A stretch of 64,000 nt of DNA from contig CATNEN010000024.1 in the NCBI GenBank assembly GCA_950097015.1, positions 496,001-560,000 of the forward strand, written 5' to 3'. Shown here piece after piece: positions 4,471 to 44,953 of this stretch (position 1 is the stretch's first letter; the number at the start of each line of letters is the position of its first letter). Below the pieces are notes generated by a model that was not told where the DNA came from, ran no database searches, and saw nothing but the letters and a program-made list of their open reading frames with translations. The DNA is from Macrostomum hystrix (Eukaryota; Animalia; Platyhelminthes). The translations under genes and the position numbers were made by a program.

Positions 4471-4987
4471 CTCTTCTGGCAAGCAGACCGAGCCTCGTTT
4501 GGATCAGGGACGGGAACATTGACTCAACTGTCTTTTACTTGGCCTCTAAAAGTCACTAATGTACTAATAGCAGTGGGAAAAAGTCGAAAAGTTGAGGTGT
4601 GAGAGACTGTCGTGAGTAGGGAACTGCCATGAGCCCAAACAATGAGGGCAGTGAAGTACAGAGCCTGAATTGTTGGGCAACCGAGAAAATTTGACTGTTT
4701 GTAACAAGCACTCCAACATTACCAAAAGATGTTAGAACATCTCTCAAGTTTTCATTCAGTTGTTCAGAAAAGCAGCAAATATTACAGTTATTACAGTTTA
4801 CTATCAAGAGAAAATAATTTTTATCCGTTTTCTTCTTGTCGTCAGCTAGATCGAGTTCAGCAGGTTTGAGTGTCATATAACAAGTAGTAAATCGTGCTCA
4901 CGTATTTCAGCCCAGCTCGCAGCAGATCAAACAGTGTCAGCGCTGGAGTCTCATTATATCGGCAGGAATTTAGATCTGGCATGTCAG

Positions 4988-5060
4988 GGCCGCGTGGCGC
5001 AATGGATAACGCGTCTGACTACGGATCAGAAGATTCCAGGTTCGAGTCCTGGCGTGGTCG
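4988..5060 (+). tRNA. tRNA-Arg-ACG: tRNA-Arg(ACG) copy 8
   Basis: Identical body. Confidence 0.97.
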
Positions 5061-5228
5061 ATCAGTCTTTTGCATCAGAAAGTTTAGTTCTGGAAATGCT
5101 TGAGTGTTGAAATGCTTAGTTGATATTGTACTGAGTCGCTAGTTACTAGGATTAGCATCTTGCTCCCACTCCTTGACTAGTTAGCCATCGCTGCTGTATG
5201 GTCTAACTTAATCTGTATCTCAAGGGAA

Positions 5229-5695
5229 GAGTATCCTTCAGTATATCGAGAACAACAGGACAGCTCTTGGATAAGAGTATCCTTCAGTATATCGAGAACA
5301 ACAGGACAGCTCTTGGATAAGAGTATCCTTCAGTATATCGAGAACAACAGGACAACTCTTGGATAAGAGTATCCTTCAGTATATCGAGAACAACAGGACA
5401 GCTCTTGGATAAGAGTATCCTTCAGTATATCGAGAACAACAGGACAGCTCTTGGATAAGAGTATCCTTCAGTATATCGAGAACAACAGGACAGCTCTTGG
5501 ATAAGAGTATCCTTCAGTATATCGAGAACAACAGGACAGCTCTTGGGTAAGAGTATCCTTCAGTATATCGAGAACAACAGGACAGCTCTTGGGTAAGAGT
5601 ATCCTTCAGTATATCGAGAACAACAGGACAGCTCTTGGGTAAGAGTATCCTTCAGTATATCGAGAACAACAGGACAGCTCTTGGGTAAGAGTATC
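5229..5695. repeat. 46-bp minisatellite x~10 (GAGTATCCTTCAGTATATCGAGAACAACAGGACAGCTCTTGGATAA)
   Basis: Period 46 (5229, 5275, ...); no spacers. Confidence 0.95.
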
Positions 5696-6290: not shown

Positions 6291-9200
6291 GATAGACTGT
6301 CCATCAGTTGATAGCTTGAGTGTCCATCAGTTAATAGCTTGAGTGTCCATCAGTTGATAGCTAGACTGTCCATCAGTTAATAGCTTGAGTGTCCATCAGT
6401 TGATAGCTTGAGTGTCCATCAGTTAATAGCTTGAGTGTCCATCAGTTAATAGCTTGAGTGTCCATCAGTTGATAGCTTGAGTGTCCATCAGTTGATAGCT
6501 TGAGTGTCCATCAGTTAATAGCTTGAGTGTCCATCAGTTAATAGCTTGAGTGTCCATCAGTTGTTAGCTTGAGTGTCCATCAGTTGATAGCTAGACTGTC
6601 CATCAGTTAATAGCTTGAGTGTCCATCAGTTGATAGCTTGAGTGTCCATCAGTTGATAGCTTGAGTGTCCATCAGTTGATAGCTTGAGTGTCCATCAGTT
6701 GATAGCTAGACTGTCCATCAGTTGATAGCTTGAGTGTCCATCAGTTGATAGCTTGAGTGTCCATCAGTTGATAGCTTGAGTGTCCATCAGTTGATAGCTT
6801 GAGTGTCCATCAGTTGATAGCTTGAGTGTCCATCAGTTGATAGCTTGAGTGTCCATCAGTTAATAGCTTGAGTGTCCATCAGTTGATAGCTAGACTGTCC
6901 ATCAGTTAATAGCTTGAGTGTCCATCAGTTGATAGCTTGAGTGTCCATCAGTTAATAGCTTGAGTGTCCATCAGTTGATAGCTTTAGTGTCCATCAGTTG
7001 ATAGCTTGAGTGTCCATCAGTTGATAGCTTGAGTGTCCATCAGTTGATGCTTGAGTGTCCATCAGTTGATAGCTTGAGTGTCCATCAGTTGATAGCTTGA
7101 GTGTCCATCAGTTGATGCTTGAGTGTCCATCAGTTGATAGCTAGACTGTCCATCAGTTGATGCTTGAGTGTCCATCAGTTGATAGCTTGAGTGTCCATCA
7201 GTTGATAGCTTGAGTGTCCATCAGTTGATAGCTTGAGTGTCCATCAGTTGATAGCTTGAGTGTCCATCAGTTGATAGCTTGAGTGTCCATCAGTTGATAG
7301 CTTGACTGTCCATCAGTTGATAGCTAGACTGTCCATCAGTTGATGCTTGAGTGTCCATCAGTTGATAGCTAGACTGTCCATCAGTTGATGCTTGAGTGTC
7401 CATCAGTTGATAGCTTGAGTGTCCATCAGTTGATAGCTTGAGTGTCCATCAGTTGATAGCTTGAGTGTCCATCAGTTGATAGCTTGAGTGTCCATCAGTT
7501 GATAGCTTGAGTGTCCATCAGTTGATAGCTTGAGTGTCCATCAGTTGATAGCTTGAGTGTCCATCAGTTGATGCTTGAGTCTCCATCAGTTGATAGCTTG
7601 AGTGTCCATCAGTTGATAGCTTGAGTGTCCATCAGTTGATGCTTGAGTGTCCATCAGTTGATGCTTGAGTGTCCATCAGTTGATAGCTTGAGTGTCCATC
7701 AGTTGATGCTTGAGTGTCCATCAGTTGATGCTTGAGTGTCCATCAGTTGATAGCTTGAGTGTCCATCAGTTGATAGCTTGAGTGTCCATCAGTTGATGCT
7801 TGAGTGTCCATCAGTTGATAGCTTGAGTGTCCATCAGTTGATGCTTGAGTGTCCATCAGTTGATAGCTAGACTGTCCATCAGTTGATAGCTTGAGTGTCC
7901 ATCAGTTGATAGCTTGAGTGTCCATCAGTTGATGCTTGAGTGTCCATCAGTTGATAGCTAGACTGTCCATCAGTTGATAGCTTGAGTGTCCATCAGTTGA
8001 TAGCTTGAGTGTCCATCAGTTGATAGCTTGAGTGTCCATCAGTTGATAGCTTGAGTGTCCATCAGTTGATAGCTTGAGTGTCCATCAGTTAATAGCTTGA
8101 GTGTCCATCAGTTGATAGCTTGAGTGTCCATCAGTTGATAGCTTGAGTGTCCATCAGTTGATAGCTTGAGTGTCCATCAGTTGATAGCTTGAGTGTCCAT
8201 CAGTTGATAGCTAGACTGTCCATCAGTTAATAGCTTGAGTGTCCATCAGTTGATAGCTTGAGTGTCCATCAGTTGATAGCTTGAGTGTCCATCAGTTGAT
8301 AGCTTTAGTGTCCATCAGTTGATAGCTAGACTGTCCATCAGTTAATAGCTTGAGTGTCCATCAGTTGATAGCTTGAGTGTCCATCAGTTGATAGCTTGAG
8401 TGTCCATCAGTTGATAGCTTTAGTGTCCATCAGTTGATAGCTAGACTGTCCATCAGTTAATAGCTTGAGTGTCCATCAGTTGATAGCTTTAGTGTCCATC
8501 AGTTGATAGCTAGACTGTCCATCAGTTGATAGCTTGAGTGTCCATCAGTTGATGCTTGAGTGTCCATCAGTTGATGCTTTAGTGTCCATCAGTTGATAGC
8601 TTTAGTGTCCATCAGTTGATAGCTAGACTGTCCATCAGTTAATAGCTTGAGTGTCCATCAGTTGATAGCTTGAGTGTCCATCAGTTGATAGCTTGAGTGT
8701 CCATCAGTTGATAGCTTGAGTGTCCATCAGTTGATAGCTTGAGTGTCCATCAGTTGATAGCTTGAGTGTCCATCAGTTGATAGCTAGACTGTCCATCAGT
8801 TAATAGCTTGAGTGTCCATCAGTTGATGCTTGAGTGTCCATCAGTTGATAGCTAGACTGTCCATCAGTTGATAGCTTGAGTGTCCATCAGTTGATGCTTG
8901 AGTGTCCATCAGTTGATGCTTTAGTGTCCATCAGTTGATAGCTTTAGTGTCCATCAGTTGATAGCTAGACTGTCCATCAGTTAATAGCTTGAGTGTCCAT
9001 CAGTTGATGCTTGAGTGTCCATCAGTTGATGGCTTGAGTGTCCATCAGTTGATAGCTTGAGTGTCCATCAGTTGATAGCTTGAGTGTCCATCAGTTGATA
9101 GCTTGAGTGTCCATCAGTTGATAGCTAGACTGTCCATCAGTTAATAGCTTGAGTGTCCATCAGTTGATGCTTGAGTGTCCATCAGTTGATAGCTAGACTG

Positions 9201-34994: not shown

Positions 34995-35480
34995 GCAGTG
35001 TGTCCTCTACCCCCTGAGTTATCCATTGTGTCCTCTACCCCCCTGAGTTATTCATTGTGTCCTCTACCCCCCTGAGTTATCCTGTGTGTCATCTACCCCC
35101 CTGAGTTATCCTGTGTGTCATCTACCCCCCTGAGTTATCCAGTGTGTCCTCTACCCCCCTGAGATATCCAGTGTGTCCTCTACCCCCCTGAGTTATCCTG
35201 TGTGTCATCTACCCCCCTGAGTTATCCAGTGTGTCCTCTACCCCCCTGAGATATCCAGTGTGTCCTCTACCCCCCCTGAGTTATCCATTGTGTCCTCTAC
35301 CCCTTGATTTATCGTGTGTCCTCTTACCCCTTAAGTAATCCAATGTGTCTTCTACCCCCCTGAAGTGTCCGTTGCGTCCTCTACCCCCTGAACTGTCCGT
35401 TGCATCCTCTACCCCCTGAGTTATCCATTTGGTCCGCTATCCCTGAACTTTCTATTGTGTCCTCTACCCCTCTGAAGTGT
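34995..35480. repeat. ~29-bp minisatellite (CTACCCCCCTGAGTTATCCAGTGTGTCCT) just 3' of the Dmrt stop codon
   Basis: Tandem with C5-7 runs. Confidence 0.92.
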
Positions 35481-35503: not shown

Positions 35504-35759
35504 TTACTTACTGCCGCTGCCGTGATCAGGCAGTGACAAGTAGGTCGGCGGCCTGGGCCCGAATGCCCATGTGGATTGCTCGTCAGGTCCGCCGCCACTG
35601 ACACCGCCACCGCCTCCTCCAACTCCTCCTCCTCCGTAGGCTTGAAAGTCTAGCGGGTTGATGGGGCCGACGCTCTCGTTGGAGATCAGCGGATAATCGC
35701 ACGGCTGTCCGCCAGAACCGCCTTTTGGAGGATTTTTAGGTACGAATTTTTGCAGTGTG
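35504..35759 (-). CDS. dmrt: Double-DM-domain Dmrt transcription factor, terminal exon
   Basis: CAAAG acceptor, phase 2 matching the donor at 35835; Gly-rich tail to stop. Confidence 0.7.
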
Positions 35760-35834
35760 CTTTGGAGGGTTGGCCCTCGTCGGCGTACATTGCACGACAA
35801 GCCTTCTAATCAGTTCTACACATTCAACAGACAC

Positions 35835-36201
35835 CGAATGTCCAGACCTTTATGGTCCTCAACATCGGGCGTCATCGGCTCGCCGGCCGCCGGATCCAGT
35901 TTGACAGCGCCGCCGTCCACAATTGACGGCGTGGCGGTCGACGCAGAAACTGCGACCGCTGCAGCAACAGCTGCCGCCGCCGCCGCCGCCGCCGCCGCAG
36001 CTGCCGAGGACGTGCCGAAGCTAGACGAGGCTGACGAATGATTATGGCGATTCTGAAACTGATGATGCTGATGCTGCAGCAGGTACTGGTGCTCTTGAAG
36101 CTGCATGGGCTGATGAAGCTGCTGCTGCTGCTGTTGCTGCTGCAGATGCGGAAACGGGGCGACGGGCGCAACGGGTCTCAGAGAGCGCCGTCTGGCCGAT
36201 A

Positions 36202-36259
<58 letters not shown>

Positions 36260-36365
36260 AGTCAGCTGGTGGTGATGCCCGAATGTGCTGAAGTGTCCGC
36301 CGGCGAATGCTGCAACAAACTGATCGTCTGGCTTGTAGTCCAGTTGATCAAATCTGGAGTGTGGA

Positions 36366-36409
<44 letters not shown>

Positions 36410-36573
36410 CTCGTCGCGCAGTAGTTTATCGTTGGATTTGCGCATTGCAATGAGCGAACAGTCGTCGCAAATACAGATAGCGTAGGGGCAGAGCTTCTTG
36501 TGACCGCGCCATGGCTGAGTTGTGCCGTGATTGCGGCAGCGGCGACAGTGGGGCCCGCTGAATGCTGAGTCAC
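35835..36573 (-). CDS. dmrt: Dmrt exon with DM domain 2 plus polyQ/polyA
   Basis: PHCRRCRNHGTTQPWRGHKKLCPYAICICDDC fits C-x2-C-x2-H-x8-H-x3-C-x4-C-x-C-x2-C; phase-1 acceptor CTCAAG. Confidence 0.9.
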
Positions 36574-36659
36574 CTTGAGCACAGAGTGAGAACAAAACAA
36601 TGCATTTGTGAAATCATTTTCTTCTTTTTCTTAGCATCATTCCCTTTTTTCCATTGAAA

Positions 36660-37640
36660 CAGCAGCCTGTTCTAACTCCAGTAGTCCTTTATAACAGCAG
36701 CCTGTTCTAACTCCAGTAGTCCTTTATAACAGCAGCCTGTTCTAACTCCAGTAGTCCTTTATAACAGCAGCCTGTTCTAACTCCAGTAGTCCTTTATAAC
36801 AGCAGCCTGTTCTAACTCCAGTAGTCCTTTATAACAGCAGCCTGTTCTAACTCCAGTAGTCCTTTATAACAGCAGCCTGTTCTAACTCCAGTAGCCCTTT
36901 ATAACAGCAGCCTGTTCTAACTCCAGTAGTCCTTTATAACAGCAGCCTGTTCTAACTCCAGTAGTCCTTTATAACAGCAGCCTGTTCTAACTCCAGTAGC
37001 CCTTTATAACAGCAGCCTGTTCTAACTCCAGTAGTCCTTTATAACAGCAGCCTGTTCTAACTCCAGTAGTCCTTTATAACAGCAGCCTGTTCTAACTCCA
37101 GTAGTCCTTTATAACAGCAGCCTGTTCTAACTCCAGTAGCCCTTTATAACAGCAGCCTGTTCTAACTCCAGTAGTCCTTTATAACAGCAGCCTGTTCTAA
37201 CTCCAGTAGCCCTTTATAACAGCAGCCTGTTCTAACTCCAGTAGTCCTTTATAACAGCAGCCTGTTCTAACTCCAGTAGCCCTTTATAACAGCAGCCTGT
37301 TCTAACTCCAGTAGTCCTTTATAACAGCAGCCTGTTCTAACTCCAGTAGTCCTTTATAACAGCAGCCTGTTCTAACTCCAGTAGTCCTTTATAACAGCAG
37401 CCTGTTCTAACTCCAGTAGCCCTTTATAACAGCAGCCTGTTCTAACTCCAGTAGTCCTTTATAACAGCAGCCTGTTCTAACTCCAGTAGCCCTTTATAAC
37501 AGCAGCCTGTTCTAACTCCAGTAGCCCTTTATAACAGCAGCCTGTTCTAACTCCAGTAGCCCTTTATAACAGCAGCCTGTTCTAACTCCAGTAGTCCTTT
37601 ATAACAGCAGCCTGTTCTAACTCCAGTAGCCCTTTATAAC
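36660..37640. repeat. 35-bp minisatellite x~28 in the Dmrt intron
   Basis: ACAGCAGCCTGTTCTAACTCCAGTAG[T/C]CCTTTATA. Confidence 0.96.
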
Positions 37641-37809
37641 TGGCCAAATTGCCCTTACATGAATGACTCAGACGTCTAAAATATATAGTTTTTTAATAAC
37701 ACTTCAATTAAATAGCTTAGCAAATGTAAAATGTTAATTTTTTTTTTTCATTTAAATATCTTCGCGAAATATTAGCCTAATGCAACATTTTGCATTATAA
37801 AAAAAAATA

Positions 37810-37881
<72 letters not shown>

Positions 37882-37883
37882 AA
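37810..37883. repeat. (AAT)n microsatellite
   Basis: Direct. Confidence 0.95.
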
Positions 37884-38261
37884 TGAATTTGGCAATTCTG
37901 GACCATTAACTGGGACTAGGATCCCATCAGATCCGGCAGCTGAATATTCTTGCAGTTGCTGCTGGTGGTACATTCGCTACATTCTGCACAGACTCTTTAT
38001 GGGGCCGAGAAAAGTACCAATTTTGTCAGGCAGCCTATGGAATGCCGTGGCTCGCAGCATCTGCGCTGATCTTGCCATTCAAAGGTGGGATTATGAAGAC
38101 AATTGCTACAAACTGGTGCAGTATCTTTTCTATAGCAAAACTATTCAACTTGAAAGCAGATTTAAGGGAAAATTCTGTTCGGTTTGGGGCGCGAAATGCA
38201 CTGCAGGAACAACTTTTTAATATATTTATATTCTGCTATTAATGTGACAAAATCTGTCTAG

Positions 38262-38557
38262 TGAAATATGACACATCTAGTGAAATATGACAGATCTAGT
38301 GAAATATGACAGATCTAGTGAAATATGACAGATCTAGTGAAATATGACAGATCTAGTGAAATATGACACATCTAGTGAAATATGACAGATCTAGTGAAAT
38401 ATGACAGATCTAGTGAAATATGACAGATCTAGTGAAATATGACAGATCTATTGAAATATGACAGATCTAGTGAAATATGACAGATCTAGTGAAATATGAC
38501 AGATCTAGTGAAATATGACAGATCTAGTGAAATATGACAGATCTAGTGAAATATGAC
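38262..38557. repeat. 19-bp minisatellite (TCTAGTGAAATATGACAGA)
   Basis: Tandem; next to the Dmrt donor site. Confidence 0.95.
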
Positions 38558-38589
38558 TAATGACATTTTTTATCATCTGAAAATGCTAC

Positions 38590-38626
38590 CTTTTTCACAG
38601 CTGAAAGAGGTCTCGCTGATGATTGT

Positions 38627-38669
<43 letters not shown>

Positions 38670-39089
38670 CGTTGCTGCTGCTGCTGCTGCTGCTGTTTCT
38701 TGAACTCCGGCATTCGACCAGTTGAGCTGAGCTGCTGGCTCTGTGCCGCAGTGAAATAGGAGTCATTCAGAGCCGAGTCACCCGCAGCCACCTGGCCGCG
38801 ATGCTCGGTCTCCTGCTTCTTCTGCAGATCCTCGCTTCTCTGCTTCCGGTAATTGCTAATCTGCTTGGCCACAATGGACCGGCCGTGCTCAACCAGCTCG
38901 CATTTGGTGCATCGGCAGTCTTTTTGTTTGCAATTTCTCTTGTGATTTTTAACGCTAATATTTAGACCGTGACCTTTGCACTTGCGGCAATAGTATTGCT
39001 TGCGGTTGCCCTGCGGTTGCTGGGCGAGTTGTTGCTGCTGCTGAAGTCCGCCGACTGTGAAAGCCTCCACAGACAGCCGGTGCTGCTGC
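38590..39089 (-). CDS. dmrt: Dmrt exon with DM domain 1 plus polyQ (start-codon exon not identified)
   Basis: YYCRKCKGHGLNISVKNHKRNCKQKDCRCTKC, intact DM ligand pattern; donor AAG|GTAGCA phase 1; no in-frame ATG upstream, so an earlier exon is needed. Confidence 0.9.
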
Positions 39090-39182: not shown

Positions 39183-39478
39183 AATAACTGATTACACCTA
39201 CCCTACCTAATTCAACCAGATGTGCAGCCGACACACCACAGCCGCAGCTATTGCGCGGCGCATCTGAAGGCTGCGTACGGCTGTCCAGTCCATGGACTGG
39301 GGAGACGCTCAATAGCTACCCCCAATCACCCCAGCTAATGCTGGTACCCATTTACCAGCTGGGTGAATTAAAGCAATGCACAAACAAAGGACACAAATTG
39401 TTCAAGTGAAGTTGCGAATCGAACCCCCAACCTTCAAGTCGTGAGTCCAACACGCTAACCACTAGGCTACAACGCCCT
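39183..39478 (-). mobile_element. SINE family A (CORE-like) copy
   Basis: Reverse complement of the 30032 element, diverged. Confidence 0.88.
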
Positions 39479-40122
39479 AGACAATATAAATAAACACATC
39501 TAGATAGATATAGTTATAGATACGTCAAAATAAACTGTGAATGAAACAATCAAACAAACAGAATATAAATAAATAAATCAATCAATCAATCAATCAATCA
39601 ATATAAACGCAAAGATAAAGAAAATAGCTAGGCAAACAAACAAGCTAATGGACAAACAAACTAGGAGTAGAAACATATTTGAGAATTGTTAGGCTAATAA
39701 TTTTCAGTTTCTAATCTCCTGATTTCTAATGTTCGCAGCCTCACAGAGAGAAATAGAAATTATTACTCCTATTATTATATATACATATGGCTCATTCTGC
39801 CTCAGCCGATTTCGCTACAAAAATCAAGAGAAGCGACCCTGCAACCCCTCCCCTTGAACCGAATCGGGCGCGGAGCTCGTCTCGGCATTAACAGTAGCGA
39901 TTTTGCATGAGAAATTGTATCGAAATCAAGAAGGAGCTGCATTTCGAGCTGCAGCCACGCATTTGGTGAATATTGCACCACACTGCATATAGGAGAAGCG
40001 GGGACAGTTACATTCATTATAGAATATGCACACATTGCAGTGTGCGAGCGCATGGGTGAGGCCGTTAGTTTTCGTTACATTTCTTCTCATTTCGCTAGTA
40101 TTAGGTCTCAAATATCTCTCTG

Positions 40123-40159
<37 letters not shown>

Positions 40160-40496
40160 GTGAGTCCGCGCACTCAATTTCACTGACAAGAGAAAACTAA
40201 GCCATATAGAGCTCACATGATAGCGATATCTATTTTCGCAGCCGAATAGTTTTTTTTGTTATAAATCTTAATTGTCTTTCTTTTTTCCCAAATGAAATTC
40301 TATATCGCGCTTCTCGTAATATACTCGTATAGTATTCAATACAAATTGAAGACCTAACCATTGAAAGAAGATTTTAACCTTACTTATTACTGGTAACTAA
40401 GACTATAGTTTAATGGTAAAACCTTTCATTTTTATGTACCAGCTGACACCTCTGCTGACACACCAGCTGACAACTTTCTTGAGCAAGTACTCTACT

Positions 40497-40775
40497 AGGG
40501 TCAGTGGCAGAGCGGTTAACGCGTTTGCCTCTCGCGGCCAGGTCCTGAGCTCGATTCCGCGGCGAGGCCACATTCATTTGGGGCGCAGCCGCGGACAGAA
40601 GGCTTGGGGGCTTGTAGTGCAATTTACGCCCTTGAAGTCACAGTGAAAGTGTACATTGTCTGACGATGAGTCAGAGCAAATGTACACACACCTGTTTGAG
40701 CGTGTGCCTGCGTACGGTACCTGTGTGCGTGTGTGCTCAGGAGTCAGCGAAATGAGCAGAATTGCCTCCTCGCTA
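40497..40775 (+). mobile_element. tRNA-derived SINE family B, near full length
   Basis: A box TGGCAGAGCGG, degenerate B box GAGCTCGATTCC; body shared with 61148 and 18835. Confidence 0.75.
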
Positions 40776-41382
40776 GAAACAACTTTAGTTCGCTGAAGCT
40801 TTATCGAAATCTTCATATTCCTTCCTACCTTGAAGTGGCTGTCACAGTTGGATGTCGATTGAACAGCCCGTTGTCCATGTCAAATGTTAATCAATGAGAC
40901 AAGACGATGAAGCTTGGGGCTAGTTCTAAGCTTTCTCTATTTTAATTCGTATCGTTGAATTCATTTTCAGCCGCGACTTTAATAAAAGATTTCTCGCAGT
41001 TAGTTAATGCGGGCATACTTGGCCAGCCCGCCAGCCAATGGCAAAGCTGTGCGCGAGTCCCCCCCTACCCACCCCTCCTCCGCCAACTGACCAGTTTGAA
41101 GGCTGAACGAATTAAATCGGCTTGACAGGCACTGATGGCAGGTATTCGTGTTTGTAGAGGATTTGCGCAACTACGCAATTCGCAGCATTTTTTTTTAATT
41201 TTGCGAATTTTTTGTTAAATACGTAATTAATTGGGTCTATATACGCCATGTATACTGGTAGGCATTCGATTTACAACAGCTCTCACTTGATTGATTGCCG
41301 TTAGTTTTTTTTCAAAAACTTTTGGAGTTAGAAAAAATTGTAATGTGTGATTATGACAATTTAAAGCTTCTGCTATCTAGAA

Positions 41383-42653
41383 CGGAAGCAGACAAATACC
41401 AGACAGAAGCAGACAGGTACCAGACAGAGGCAGACAAATACCAGACAGAAGCAGACAGGTACCAGACAGAAGCAGACAGGTACCAGACAGAAGCAGACAG
41501 GTACCAGACAGAGGCAGACAAATACCAGACAGAAGCAGACAGGTACCAGACAGAAGCAGACAGGTACCAGACAGAAGCAGACAGGTACCAGATAGAAGCA
41601 GACAGGTACCAGACAGAAGCAGGTACCAGATAGAAGCAGACAGGTACCAGACAGAGGCAGACAAATACCAGACAGAAGCAGACAGGTACCAGATAGAAGC
41701 AGACAGGTACCAGACAGAAGCAGACAGGTACCAGATAGAAGCAGACAGGTACCAGACAGAAGCAGACAAATACCAGACAGAAGCAGACAGGTACCAGACA
41801 GAAGCAGACAAATACCAGACAGAAGCAGACAAATACCAGACAGAAGCAGACAAATACCAGACAGAAGCAGACAAATACCAGACAGAAGCAGACAGTGAGA
41901 CAAATACCAGACAGAAGCAGACAGTGAGACAGGTACCAGACAGAAGCAGACATGTACCAGACAGAAGCAGACAAATACCAGACAGAAGCAGACATGTACC
42001 AGACAGAAGCAGACAAATACCAGACAGAAGCAGACAGGTACCAGACAGAAGCAGACAAATACCAGACAGAAGCAGACAAATACCAGACAGAAGCAGACAA
42101 ATACCAGACAGAAGCAGACAGTGAGACAGGTACCAGACAGAAGCAGACATGTACCAGATAGAAGCAGACAGGTACCAGACAGAAGCAGGTACCAGATAGA
42201 AGCAGACAGGTACCAGACAGAAGCAGACAGGTGCCAGACAGAAGCAGACAGGTACCAGACAGAAGCAGACAGGTACCAGACAGAAGCAGACAGGTACCAG
42301 ACAAAAGCAGACAAATACCAGACAGAAGCAGACAAATACCAGACAGAAGCAGACAGGTACCAGACAGAAGCAGACAGGTACCAGACAGAGGCAGACAGAT
42401 ACCAGACAGAAGCAGACAGGTACCAGACAGAAGCAGACAGGTACCAGACAGAAGCAGACAAATACCAGACAGAAGCAGACAGTGAGACAGGTACCAGACA
42501 GAAGCAGACAGGCATTGAACAGAAGCAGACAGGCATTGAACAGAAGCAGACAGATATTGAACAGAATCAGACAGGCATTGAACAGAAGCAGACAGGCATT
42601 GAACAGAAGCAGACAGGTATTGAACAGAAGCAGACAGGTATTGAACAGAAGCA
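41383..42653. repeat. 21-bp minisatellite (GACAGAAGCAGACAGGTACCA)
   Basis: Tandem; source of spurious long ORFs. Confidence 0.96.
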
Positions 42654-42887
42654 GTAAGCGTCGTGCGTGCGCACGCAAGCAGTCGAAAAAAACTTAGGGA
42701 TTGCTCTTTGATACAATTACGTATATGAGGGGAGAATGGGATGAGAAATGGGATCTACCTGCCAATCAGAAGCAGAAAGCAAAGCCAGTGCAATATTCTT
42801 GGATGGCCAGTGCTCAAAAACAAAATTGATTTTGATACATTTCTTTCTTCTGGGCTTTGCATGTTGCTGGCTGAGGGACGGACTGAG

Positions 42888-43483
42888 GGAGTGACTGTAG
42901 AGTGACTGTAGAGTGACTGTAGAGTAACTGTAGAGTGACTGAGGTAGTGACTGAGGGAGTGACTGAGGTAGTGACTGAGGGAGTGACTGAGGGAGTGACT
43001 GAGGGAGTGACTGAGGGAGTGACTGAGGGACTGACTGAGGGAGTGACTGAGGTAGTGACTGAGGGAGTGACTGAGGTAGTGACTGAGGTAGTGACTGAGG
43101 GAGTGACTGAGGGAGTGACTGAGGGAGTGACTGAGGGAGTGACTGAGGGAGTGACTGAGGGAGTGACTGAGGGAGTGACTGAGGGAGTGACTGAGGGACT
43201 GACTGAGGGAGTGACTGAGGGACTGACTGAGGGAGTGACTGAGGTAATGACTGAGGGAGTGACTGAGGGACTGACTGAGGGACTGACTGAGGGACTGACT
43301 GAGGGAGTGACTGAGGGACTGACTGAGGGAGTGACTGAGGTAGTGACTGAGGGACTGACTGAGGGACTGACTGAGGGAGTGACTGAGGTAATGACTGAGG
43401 GAGTGACTGAGGGACTGACTGAGGGACTGACTGAGGGAGTGACTGAGGGAGTGACTGAGGGAGTGACTGAGGGAGTGACTGAG
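42888..43483. repeat. 12-bp minisatellite (GTGACTGAGGGA)
   Basis: Tandem. Confidence 0.96.
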
Positions 43484-43684
43484 CACTAGTACTCGTAAAT
43501 CAGTTAGAAAGCCCTTGAATTTTTACGTAGAAATTTTGTGGTTCGAGTAAACTGAACGCAAATAATTCAGTTTTAGTGACTCGCTATATCATGAATTTGT
43601 ACAAGCAAAGCGTTAAATTTGATGAATAATTTGTTTATCAAAAATAGGAAAAGTTTGATTGTCAGGTTGTCAATACAGGTTGTC

Positions 43685-44953
43685 AATACAGAGACACCCT
43701 GACAATCAATACAGAGACACCCTGACAATCAACACAGAGACACCCTGACAATCAATACATAGACACCCTGACAATCAGTACAGAGACACCCTGACAATCA
43801 ATACATAGACACCCTGACAACCAATACATAGACACCCTGACAATCAATACATAGACACCCCGACAACCAATACATAGACACCCTGACAATCAGTACAGAG
43901 ACACCCTGACAACCAATACATAGACACCCCGACAACCAATACATAGACACCCTGACAATCAGTACAGAGACACCCTGACAATCAATACAGAGACACCCTG
44001 ACAACCAATACATAGACACCCTGACAATCAACACAGAGACACCCTGACAATCAGTACAGAGACACCCTGACAATCAATACAGAGACACCCTGACAATCAG
44101 TACAGAGACACCCTGACAATCAATACATAGACACCCTGACAACCAATACATAGACACCCTGACAATCAATACATAGACACCCCGACAACCAATACATAGA
44201 CACCCTGACAATCAGTACAGAGACACCCTGACAACCAATACATAGACACCCCGACAACCAATACATAGACACCCTGACAATCAGTACAGAGACACCCTGA
44301 CAATCAATACAGAGACACCCTGACAACCAATACATAGACACCCTGACAATCAACACAGAGACACCCTGACAATCAGTACAGAGACACCCTGACAATCAAT
44401 ACAGAGACACCCTGACAATCAATACATAGAATCCCTGATAACCAATACATAGAACCCTGACAATCAATACAGAGACACCCTGACAATCAATACAGAGACA
44501 CCCTGACAATCAATACAGAGACACCCTGAAAATCAATACAGAGACACCCTGACAATCAATACAGAGACACCCTGACAATCAATACAGAGACACCCTGACA
44601 ATCAATACAGAGACACCCTGACAATCAATACAGAGACACCCTGACAACCAATACAGAGACACCCTGACAATCAATACAGAGACACCCTGACAATCAATAC
44701 AGAGACACCCTGACAATCAATACAGAGACACCCTGACAATCAATACAGAGACACCCTGACAATCAATACAGAGACACCCTGACAATCAATACAGAGACAC
44801 CCTGACAATCAATACAGAGACACCCTGACAATCAATACAGAGACACCCTGACAATCAATACAGAGACACCCTGACAATCAATACAGAGACACCCTGACAA
44901 TCAATACAGAGACACCCTGACAATCAGTACAGAGACACCCTGACAATCAATAC
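43685..44953. repeat. 23-bp satellite (CAGAGACACCCTGACAATCAATA) with a 322-bp (14-mer) higher-order duplication
   Basis: Identical 91-aa ORF translations at 43798 and 44120 (offset 322 = 14x23). Confidence 0.95.

Follow-up and report, generated by a model that had tools for sequence, protein, structure and literature searches.

A probable two-DM Dmrt gene in Macrostomum hystrix

Here we describe a Dmrt (doublesex/mab-3-type) gene in a 64,000-nucleotide stretch of the genome of the flatworm Macrostomum hystrix (assembly GCA_950097015.1, contig CATNEN010000024.1, positions 496,001 to 560,000), which we call the window and in which positions are counted from the first letter. The minus strand of the window carries two long open frames, each with one complete DM zinc module, and the locus is a real Dmrt transcription-factor gene of this hermaphroditic species. 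That a single gene encodes both DM domains, as a first-pass annotation made from the letters alone had proposed, is the best reading of the locus and a quite probable one: the paralogous loci, the exon structure of a relative in Macrostomum lignano and a flatworm-wide domain layout all agree with it. Only a shade less probable, in our judgement, is the full explanation, in which this two-domain gene belongs to a flatworm family, would bind DNA by the mechanism proposed below and would have a role in sexual differentiation. The case for one gene is comparative. The features of the gene are listed here (A-type and B-type refer to first and second domains; slashes in sequences mark exon boundaries).

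38861-39001, minus strand: DM domain 1 (DM1, A-type), with eight ligands and the recognition helix; Pfam PF00751, 45.8 bits, E 5.7e-12, profile positions 1-47
36437-36553, minus strand: DM domain 2 (DM2, B-type), with eight ligands; Pfam PF00751, 56.4 bits, E 2.6e-15, profile positions 3-41
40829-40878, minus strand: speculative first coding exon of 16 codons plus 2 bases, its ATG having a good context; phase-2 donor AAG/GTAGGA
38590-39089, minus strand: DM1 (A-type) exon; phase-2 acceptor (ag at 39091-39090), phase-1 donor AAG/GTAGCA (gt at 38589-38588), no in-frame ATG
38632-38695, minus strand: polyglutamine (polyQ) run, a CAG repeat, in the inter-domain linker
36574-38589, minus strand: predicted inter-DM intron of 2016 bp; phases agree at both ends
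35848-36573, minus strand: DM2 (B-type) exon; pyrimidine tract followed by a phase-1 acceptor (ag at 36575-36574), candidate phase-1 donor AAG/GTCTGG at 35848/35847
35504-35721, minus strand: candidate last coding exon with a Gly-rich tail; open frame with stop at 35504-35506, GC 64%, no homologue, predicted

Both domains contain eight zinc ligands with the spacing C-x2-C-x2-H-x8-H-x3-C-x4-C-x-C-x2-C, as found by pattern search (C..C..H.{8}H...C.{4}C.C..C) and by direct reading, and both exceed the Pfam PF00751 gathering cut-off of 27 bits; in a genome-wide scan they scored 47.4 bits (DM1) and 58.8 bits (DM2). The first-pass annotation had reported two modules with all eight ligands, and they are indeed present with canonical spacing. 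Structures have been solved for the DM domains of DMRT1 (4yj0) and DSX (1lpv), and DM1 and DM2 each match both of them. With DMRT1, the DM1 alignment runs through the recognition helix, whereas that of DM2 covers the zinc module and the first helical turn and then stops; likewise, the Pfam match of DM2 ends at profile position 41 of 47. The post-zinc helix of DM2 (..RKSNDKLLRDE) is thus divergent, as had been noticed before. A variant helix of this type is kept in all flatworm B domains, suggesting that it is probably functional but different.

Predicted exon structure of the gene

Joined, the DM1 and DM2 exons would read ..SCEK-G-DSAFSGPHC.. across the boundary. The first-pass annotation had placed this junction at 38590/36573 in phase 1, and direct reading shows its coordinates and phases to be exact; its estimate of a linker of about 95 amino acids with polyQ was close to the 97 residues that we count. 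The open frames comprise 166 codons for the DM1 exon and 241 codons for the DM2 exon. Upstream of either domain, the window exons contain no in-frame ATG, so that neither DM exon is able to stand alone. At least one further 5' exon would supply the start codon and a short 3' exon would add the Gly-rich tail, giving a product of approximately 480 to 500 residues. The GC content is 54% in the DM1 exon (68% at third codon positions, GC3), 61% in the DM2 exon and 54-64% in the exons overall (GC3 66-69%); the unique DNA between the DM exons has 32.5% GC. The inter-DM intron is for the most part satellite sequence; it contains a 19-bp satellite (38257-38557, 15.8 copies), an (AAT)25 run (37810-37884), a 35-bp satellite (36658-37640, 28 copies) and approximately 600 bp of unique AT-rich DNA.

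For the 3' end, a 75-bp phase-2 intron (35834-35760) had been suggested. It is one of three options that keep the frame and is possible, but homology does not favour it, because the matching donor is phase 1 both in M. lignano and in the M. hystrix paralogue on contig 12 (L012, described below). By comparison with these genes, the last intron is more likely phase 1, starting at 35847 and ending at 35722 or at 35776 (exon from 35775). Both acceptors are compatible with the phase-1 donor; we prefer 35722 for the pyrimidine tract that precedes it and the G/GC that is formed.

At the 5' end, homology revealed no conserved start exon, either with tblastn or by local alignment of M. lignano exon 1 to every candidate combining an ATG with a phase-2 donor, in a search that covered the sequence upstream of all three M. 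hystrix two-DM loci, including an extra 10 kb of contig 12. The speculative first exon at 40878-40829 has a phase that agrees with the phase-2 acceptor of DM1 and with the phase-2 first intron of the M. lignano gene Mlig015551, and a CCAAT-containing, GC-rich stretch lies approximately 200 bp upstream of it. It was chosen purely on such signals, as one of 85 ATG/GT candidates in 7 kb, and has no homology to any paralogue or orthologue. Two other solutions were rejected, the second of them as a general one. The GC-rich island at 39300-39480, with an ATG at 39293, is a dispersed repeat resembling a short interspersed nuclear element (SINE). An AUG provided by a spliced leader would be in frame for only one window NAGNAG acceptor and is impossible at the phase-2 acceptors of both paralogues.

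Paralogues in M. hystrix and relatives in M. lignano

A genome-wide DM scan gave 11 matches, which correspond to four canonical single-DM genes and three two-domain loci. The latter are the window gene and two loci on contig 12 (C12), at C12:2505561/2506120 (L012) and C12:454948/455194 (L009/L013). All three have the A domain followed by the B domain on one strand. At C12:454948-455322 (L009 1450-2313; L013), the two domains lie 37 residues apart in one uninterrupted open frame, and the A/B intron is therefore absent. At the other two loci, the first domains are the ones that most resemble window DM1 (73% and 47%) and the second domains those that most resemble window DM2 (71% and 60%), which indicates that the A/B pair is older than the gene duplication. 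Between the window gene and L012, the proportion of nonsynonymous differences (pN) is 0.18-0.19 and that of synonymous differences (pS) 0.57-0.75 for both domains; with pN this far below pS, both domains are under purifying selection.

These values also bear on whether the locus could be a pseudogene, that is, a decaying, satellite-invaded and unexpressed duplicate of the Mlig015551-type gene on contig 12. We regard this as very improbable. Satellite arrays fill the introns and flanks, which also hold a SINE-like element; however, the functional paralogue L012 is equally ringed by satellites. Although the start exon was not found, the donor after DM1 is weak and no M. lignano orthologue was seen, the gene has kept long open frames (166 and 241 codons) and all 16 zinc ligands, pN is far below pS relative to the paralogue, and GC3 is high, as in coding DNA.

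The closest M. lignano relative, PAA69735.1 (P0003, A0A267G0P8, BOX15_Mlig015551; 392 amino acids, starting with Met), is annotated as a 'DM domain-containing protein' and has A and B domains in one chain. Mapped on its own genome (L015), it has a phase-2 intron after a 25-codon first exon (GG/GTAAGT), a phase-1 A/B intron with Gly-Asp right before ..PHC, and a phase-1 donor after the B exon. Mlig015551 encodes A and then B in one chain, as proposed for the window gene, and has the intron pattern and Gly-Asp junction of the window model; identity to the window domains is 77% over 61 amino acids for DM1 and 61% for DM2. The phase-1 A/B intron splits a Gly codon in M. lignano (ATTG/GTGAGT .. cag/GC GAC, Gly-Asp); its counterparts, both phase 1 and likewise with a split Gly codon, read CTTG/GTGAGT .. 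cag/GC AAC in L012 and AAAG/GTAGCA .. aag/GT GAC in the window, the latter giving Gly-Asp as in M. lignano. The series of intron phases (phase 2, phase 1, phase 1) is common to L012, Mlig015551 and the window gene, in the last case with the candidate donor at 35848.

The true M. hystrix orthologue of Mlig015551 is L012, which is colinear with it through exons 2-4, and not the window gene. The latter differs from Mlig015551 by its polyQ linker of 97 residues, versus approximately 12, by an unrelated C-terminal part and by its 2-kb intron. In the tree of B domains, the window sequence lies outside the pair formed by L012 and M. lignano (support 97/84). These comparisons make the window gene the third of the Macrostomum paralogues, and Mlig015551 of M. 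lignano the gene nearest to it. A second M. lignano protein, A0A1I8FPH8 (P0001), also has both domains in one chain and is the orthologue of L009. A literature look-up for the name Mlig015551 returned nothing.

Some side observations concern these other loci. The M. lignano models of the L009 gene, A0A1I8FPH8 and the 982-residue P0002, are fused to a universal stress protein (Usp) domain, and M. hystrix has a matching Usp-like exon 2.4 kb downstream of the L009 gene (L013 8752-8904, 82% identity); either the two are syntenic neighbours and the M. lignano fusion model is false, or the fusion is real. At L012 (C12:2505561-2506239; L012 4950-7600), a satellite of approximately 42 bp occurs twice, once upstream of the exon for DM-A (4958-5470) and again in the intron that follows the exon for DM-B (6600-7400); it is open in several frames and so produces long spurious open reading frames (ORFs) that run into real exons. 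At C29:1790617-1791408 (L014 5371-6546), the DM domain of a canonical Dmrt gene is split after ..SALKG by an intron that is filled with an in-frame repeat, and the whole reads as a 391-residue ORF with half a DM domain at each end.

A two-DM family across flatworms

We built a profile from the two-domain frame of L009, from M. lignano P0001 and from the A and B exons, each taken singly, of the window gene and L012, so that the queries were single exons or natural open frames, and scored it against 1.84 billion representative proteins. This gave 2655 matches at E <= 0.001 and 27 at E <= 1e-30, and nearly all of the best matches span both domains in one chain. Two DM motifs are present in 85 of the 158 proteins sampled. 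A and B domains occur together in 23 flatworm chains, with a distance between the first Cys residues of 62 to 188 residues, compared with 142 in the joined window model. The named flatworm two-DM proteins come from tapeworms (Echinococcus, Mesocestoides, Hymenolepis), a monogenean (Cichlidogyrus), flukes (Schistosoma, Trichobilharzia, Fasciola, Opisthorchis, Clonorchis, Paragonimus) and Macrostomum, and every named relative has both domains in one chain. A word search with the whole DM2 frame gave no match, being swamped by polyQ words, and one with the part of DM1 outside the polyQ run gave none within the permitted lengths.

The B domains fall into two groups. Group I has the signature ..RKSN[ED]K.LR[ED] and contains the window gene, L012, Echinococcus CDS40579.1, Schistosoma japonicum TNN13625.1 and the Opisthorchis/Clonorchis proteins. 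Group II has the signature ..RK.TEK.LR.. and contains L009, Mesocestoides, Fasciola and Hymenolepis; in the monogenean, both groups are represented, by one member each. By its B-domain signature, the window gene falls in group I of a flatworm-wide two-DM Dmrt family.

Tandem-DM proteins had been described in the first-pass annotation as mainly known from nematodes, a view that no longer holds given that the layout is conserved in Macrostomum, tapeworms, flukes and monogeneans. A 2026 preprint (10.64898/2026.01.01.697290) likewise states that two adjacent DM domains are not shared by invertebrates other than nematodes, and in the literature that we searched, there is hardly any mention of the layout except for nematodes and some few arthropods. 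Public databases already contain the two-domain flatworm proteins under automatic names, and one was used in a 2013 planarian study.

Further two-DM proteins were found outside flatworms and nematodes, namely in Brevipalpus obovatus (P0034, XP_074604031.1) and among unnamed Logan proteins (P0028, P0038, P0051, P0057, P0073, P0096 and P0099). In several such proteins, the two domains are mutually closest in the tree, suggesting repeated independent internal DM duplications in different animal lineages.

One gene, two genes or alternative isoforms

The conserved layout is relevant to a different reading, in which the locus comprises two adjacent single-DM genes. DM1 would then be read through to a stop past 38590 (..SCEKGSIFR), and DM2 would be expressed from its own promoter in the spacer, possibly with a first exon in the 37.9-kb ORF (ATG at 37973, phase-1 donor AATG/GTCCAG). 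We find this improbable. Both domains are in one chain in every named flatworm relative, the A-then-B order is kept at all three M. hystrix loci, one of which has a single open frame, and the annotated M. lignano gene has the same intron phase and the same Gly-Asp junction. In favour of two genes, the consensus at the DM1 donor is not strong, the ORF at 37752-37973 starts with an ATG and has a phase-1-compatible GT, and L012 has an in-frame ATG 43 codons upstream of DM-B. However, the unique spacer DNA, with its low GC content, is unlike the exons, and the 37.9-kb ORF is unlikely to be a coding exon: it is AT-rich, enters the (AAT)n array and lacks a homologue both at the paralogous loci and in M. 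lignano.

A single gene might also use its DM exons alternatively (A only, B only, or both), as spider Dsx2 or ctenophore DmrtB do, making the two-DM protein just one product or a minor one. Precedents are the four cloned splice variants of planarian dmd-1 (PMC3674237) and spider Dsx2, in which the DM domains sit in different isoforms (PMC6604209), and the weak donor after DM1 could favour regulated splicing. Skipping of the DM1 exon would, however, join a phase-2 donor to a phase-1 acceptor and cause a frameshift, so that a B-only isoform needs another first exon, and the annotated flatworm proteins all hold both domains. Both domains are also constrained, though isoform use would preserve that too. 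We give this alternative the same small chance as two separate genes.

One gene with both domains joined in its product is the reading that we retain, and several points weigh against it. The junction from 38590 to 36573 is predicted by comparison, no M. hystrix protein is among the search matches, and the 5' exon was not found by homology. The paralogue and the orthologue have stronger donors (GTGAGT) than the AAG/GTAGCA of DM1, and a second phase-1 donor (AGCT/GTGAAA) lies 9 nt upstream of the latter. Single-domain isoforms are possible, given the four splice forms of planarian dmd-1. No M. lignano orthologue of the window paralogue is among the top matches, and function is assigned by homology only. 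Finally, as regards the sexual role, the two-DM layout of the group that includes the planarian gene Smed-dmd-1 was read in parasite proteins such as Clonorchis GAA52246.1 (see below).

Relation to nematode MAB-3

Before the tree was made, a test of shared origin with the nematode two-DM proteins had been planned. In the maximum-likelihood tree of 87 DM domains (52 columns), all flatworm first domains, including window DM1, form one clade (99/98), and all flatworm second domains another (98/90). The window B domain joins those of L012 and M. lignano (99/91) within group I (99/98). A separate clade holds the nematode first domains (99/93), nematode second domains cluster loosely (64/93), and flatworm A domains do not join nematode A domains. 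Holding flatworm A and nematode A together costs 40.7 log-likelihood units (approximately unbiased (AU) test, p 0.0015), and doing so for the B domains costs 47.7 units (AU p 0.0011). This is good, though not final, evidence that there is no domain-for-domain orthology with the nematode MAB-3 group, as the alignment has 52 columns and some branches are long. On the same sequence evidence, the two-DM layout of flatworms and nematodes is most likely convergent.

The gene had initially been called MAB-3-like, a description that is apt for the layout; domain orthology is rejected by the AU tests. Similarly, the comparison of the YYC and PHC starts of DM1 and DM2 with those of MAB-3 is correct for the first domain, as nematode first domains start YYC/YFC, but MAB-3-like second domains start PNC/PKC. 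A PHC start occurs only in another nematode subgroup, e.g., in Strongyloides ratti CEF64124.1, in a sample in which no C. elegans protein was identified by name. The nematode group-3 Dmrt proteins (MAB-3, DMD-3 and others), which have a role in male development, share with the window model two adjacent DM domains and, in domain 1, two aromatic residues directly ahead of the first Cys (YYC/YFC). In contrast, the signatures differ (CQRCLNHG against CRKCKGHG), and nematode second domains keep the canonical ..LMA.QI..RR.Q helix, which flatworm B domains lack.

Possible function and proposed mechanism

Clonorchis GAA52246.1, which has both domains, shares a 90% cluster with the Opisthorchis protein. 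In the study of Chong et al. (2013; PMC3674237), GAA52246.1 is Clonorchis dmrt-1a and was grouped, together with Clonorchis dmrt-1b and Schistosoma mansoni dmd-1 and dmd-2, next to Smed-dmd-1 (PMC3674237). In the planarian, a simultaneous hermaphrodite, male germ cells and accessory organs depend on Smed-dmd-1 (PMC3674237), and within the family, Smed-dmd-1 and S. mansoni dmd-1 are the only genes with known male-specific or reproductive expression and function (PMC3674237). Simultaneous hermaphroditism is found in M. hystrix as well (PMC10468722), as had been guessed from the sequence. The flatworm dmd-1/dmrt-1a group has the A+B layout proposed for the window gene and shares with it the B signature ..PHCRRCRNHG..WKGHKK..RKSN[ED]K.LR[ED] (group support 99/98), but shows no similarity to it outside the DM domains; Macrostomum has two group-I copies, whereas the parasites show one. 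By analogy with these genes, the window gene is a good candidate sex regulator and not a new kind of gene. That it acts in male differentiation we would give, at best, an even chance.

MAB-3 depends on both of its DM domains, and its binding to an asymmetric site is probably monomeric (PMC1931443). By analogy, the window protein would bind an asymmetric DNA site as a monomer, with the A domain using a near-canonical recognition helix and the B domain a re-modelled, family-conserved helix as a different reading head, and would act in sexual, probably male, differentiation as planarian dmd-1 does. DMRT1 and DSX share the zinc module with both window domains and, in the case of DM1, also the DNA-recognition helix; they differ in having only one DM domain and in binding palindromic sites as dimers or larger oligomers, and window DM2 diverges from them after the first helical turn.

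A broader reading combines these strands, though we hold it only tentatively and think it somewhat doubtful as a whole. Two-DM proteins would have arisen independently in flatworms and nematodes, the flatworm version having appeared no later than the divergence of Macrostomorpha from the parasitic flatworms. The B helix (..RKSN[DE]K.LR[DE]) would have been re-built and constant since, giving a mode of DNA reading unlike that of every DM domain studied. The family would have expanded to three genes in Macrostomum, with the window gene and its long polyQ linker as a lineage-specific regulator of male versus female allocation.

Repeats around the gene

The window gene and its surroundings are unusually dense in distinct short-unit satellites, with units of 29, 35 and 19 bp and several more upstream; the stretches are at 35000-35475, 36658-37640, 38257-38557 and 41300-44900. 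The paralogous loci are also satellite-rich, with different satellites. Upstream of the DM1 exon are two tRNA-like, GC-rich segments (39300-39480 and 40490-40565). The first is a dispersed element of approximately 160 bp, for which a first look at the genome gave at least 1743 candidates (approximately 83% identity), and is probably a tRNA-derived SINE; ARAGORN found no tRNA gene in this GC-rich upstream region at 39300-39480.

Significance

To our knowledge, Dmrt genes are the only class of sex regulators common to animals at large, and planarian dmd-1 is the one gene from which we know of their use in simultaneous hermaphrodites. For work on sex allocation and sexual conflict in hermaphrodites, the main model is Macrostomum, and the M. 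hystrix genome is a clean diploid. The present analysis provides three targets for RNA interference and in situ hybridisation, i.e., the window gene, C12:2505561 and C12:454948, all in the family grouped with dmd-1. The flatworm layout also corrects the view that two adjacent DM domains are peculiar to nematodes, and the flatworm two-DM proteins, seemingly of separate origin, offer a natural test case for the reading of asymmetric DNA sites by tandem DM domains.

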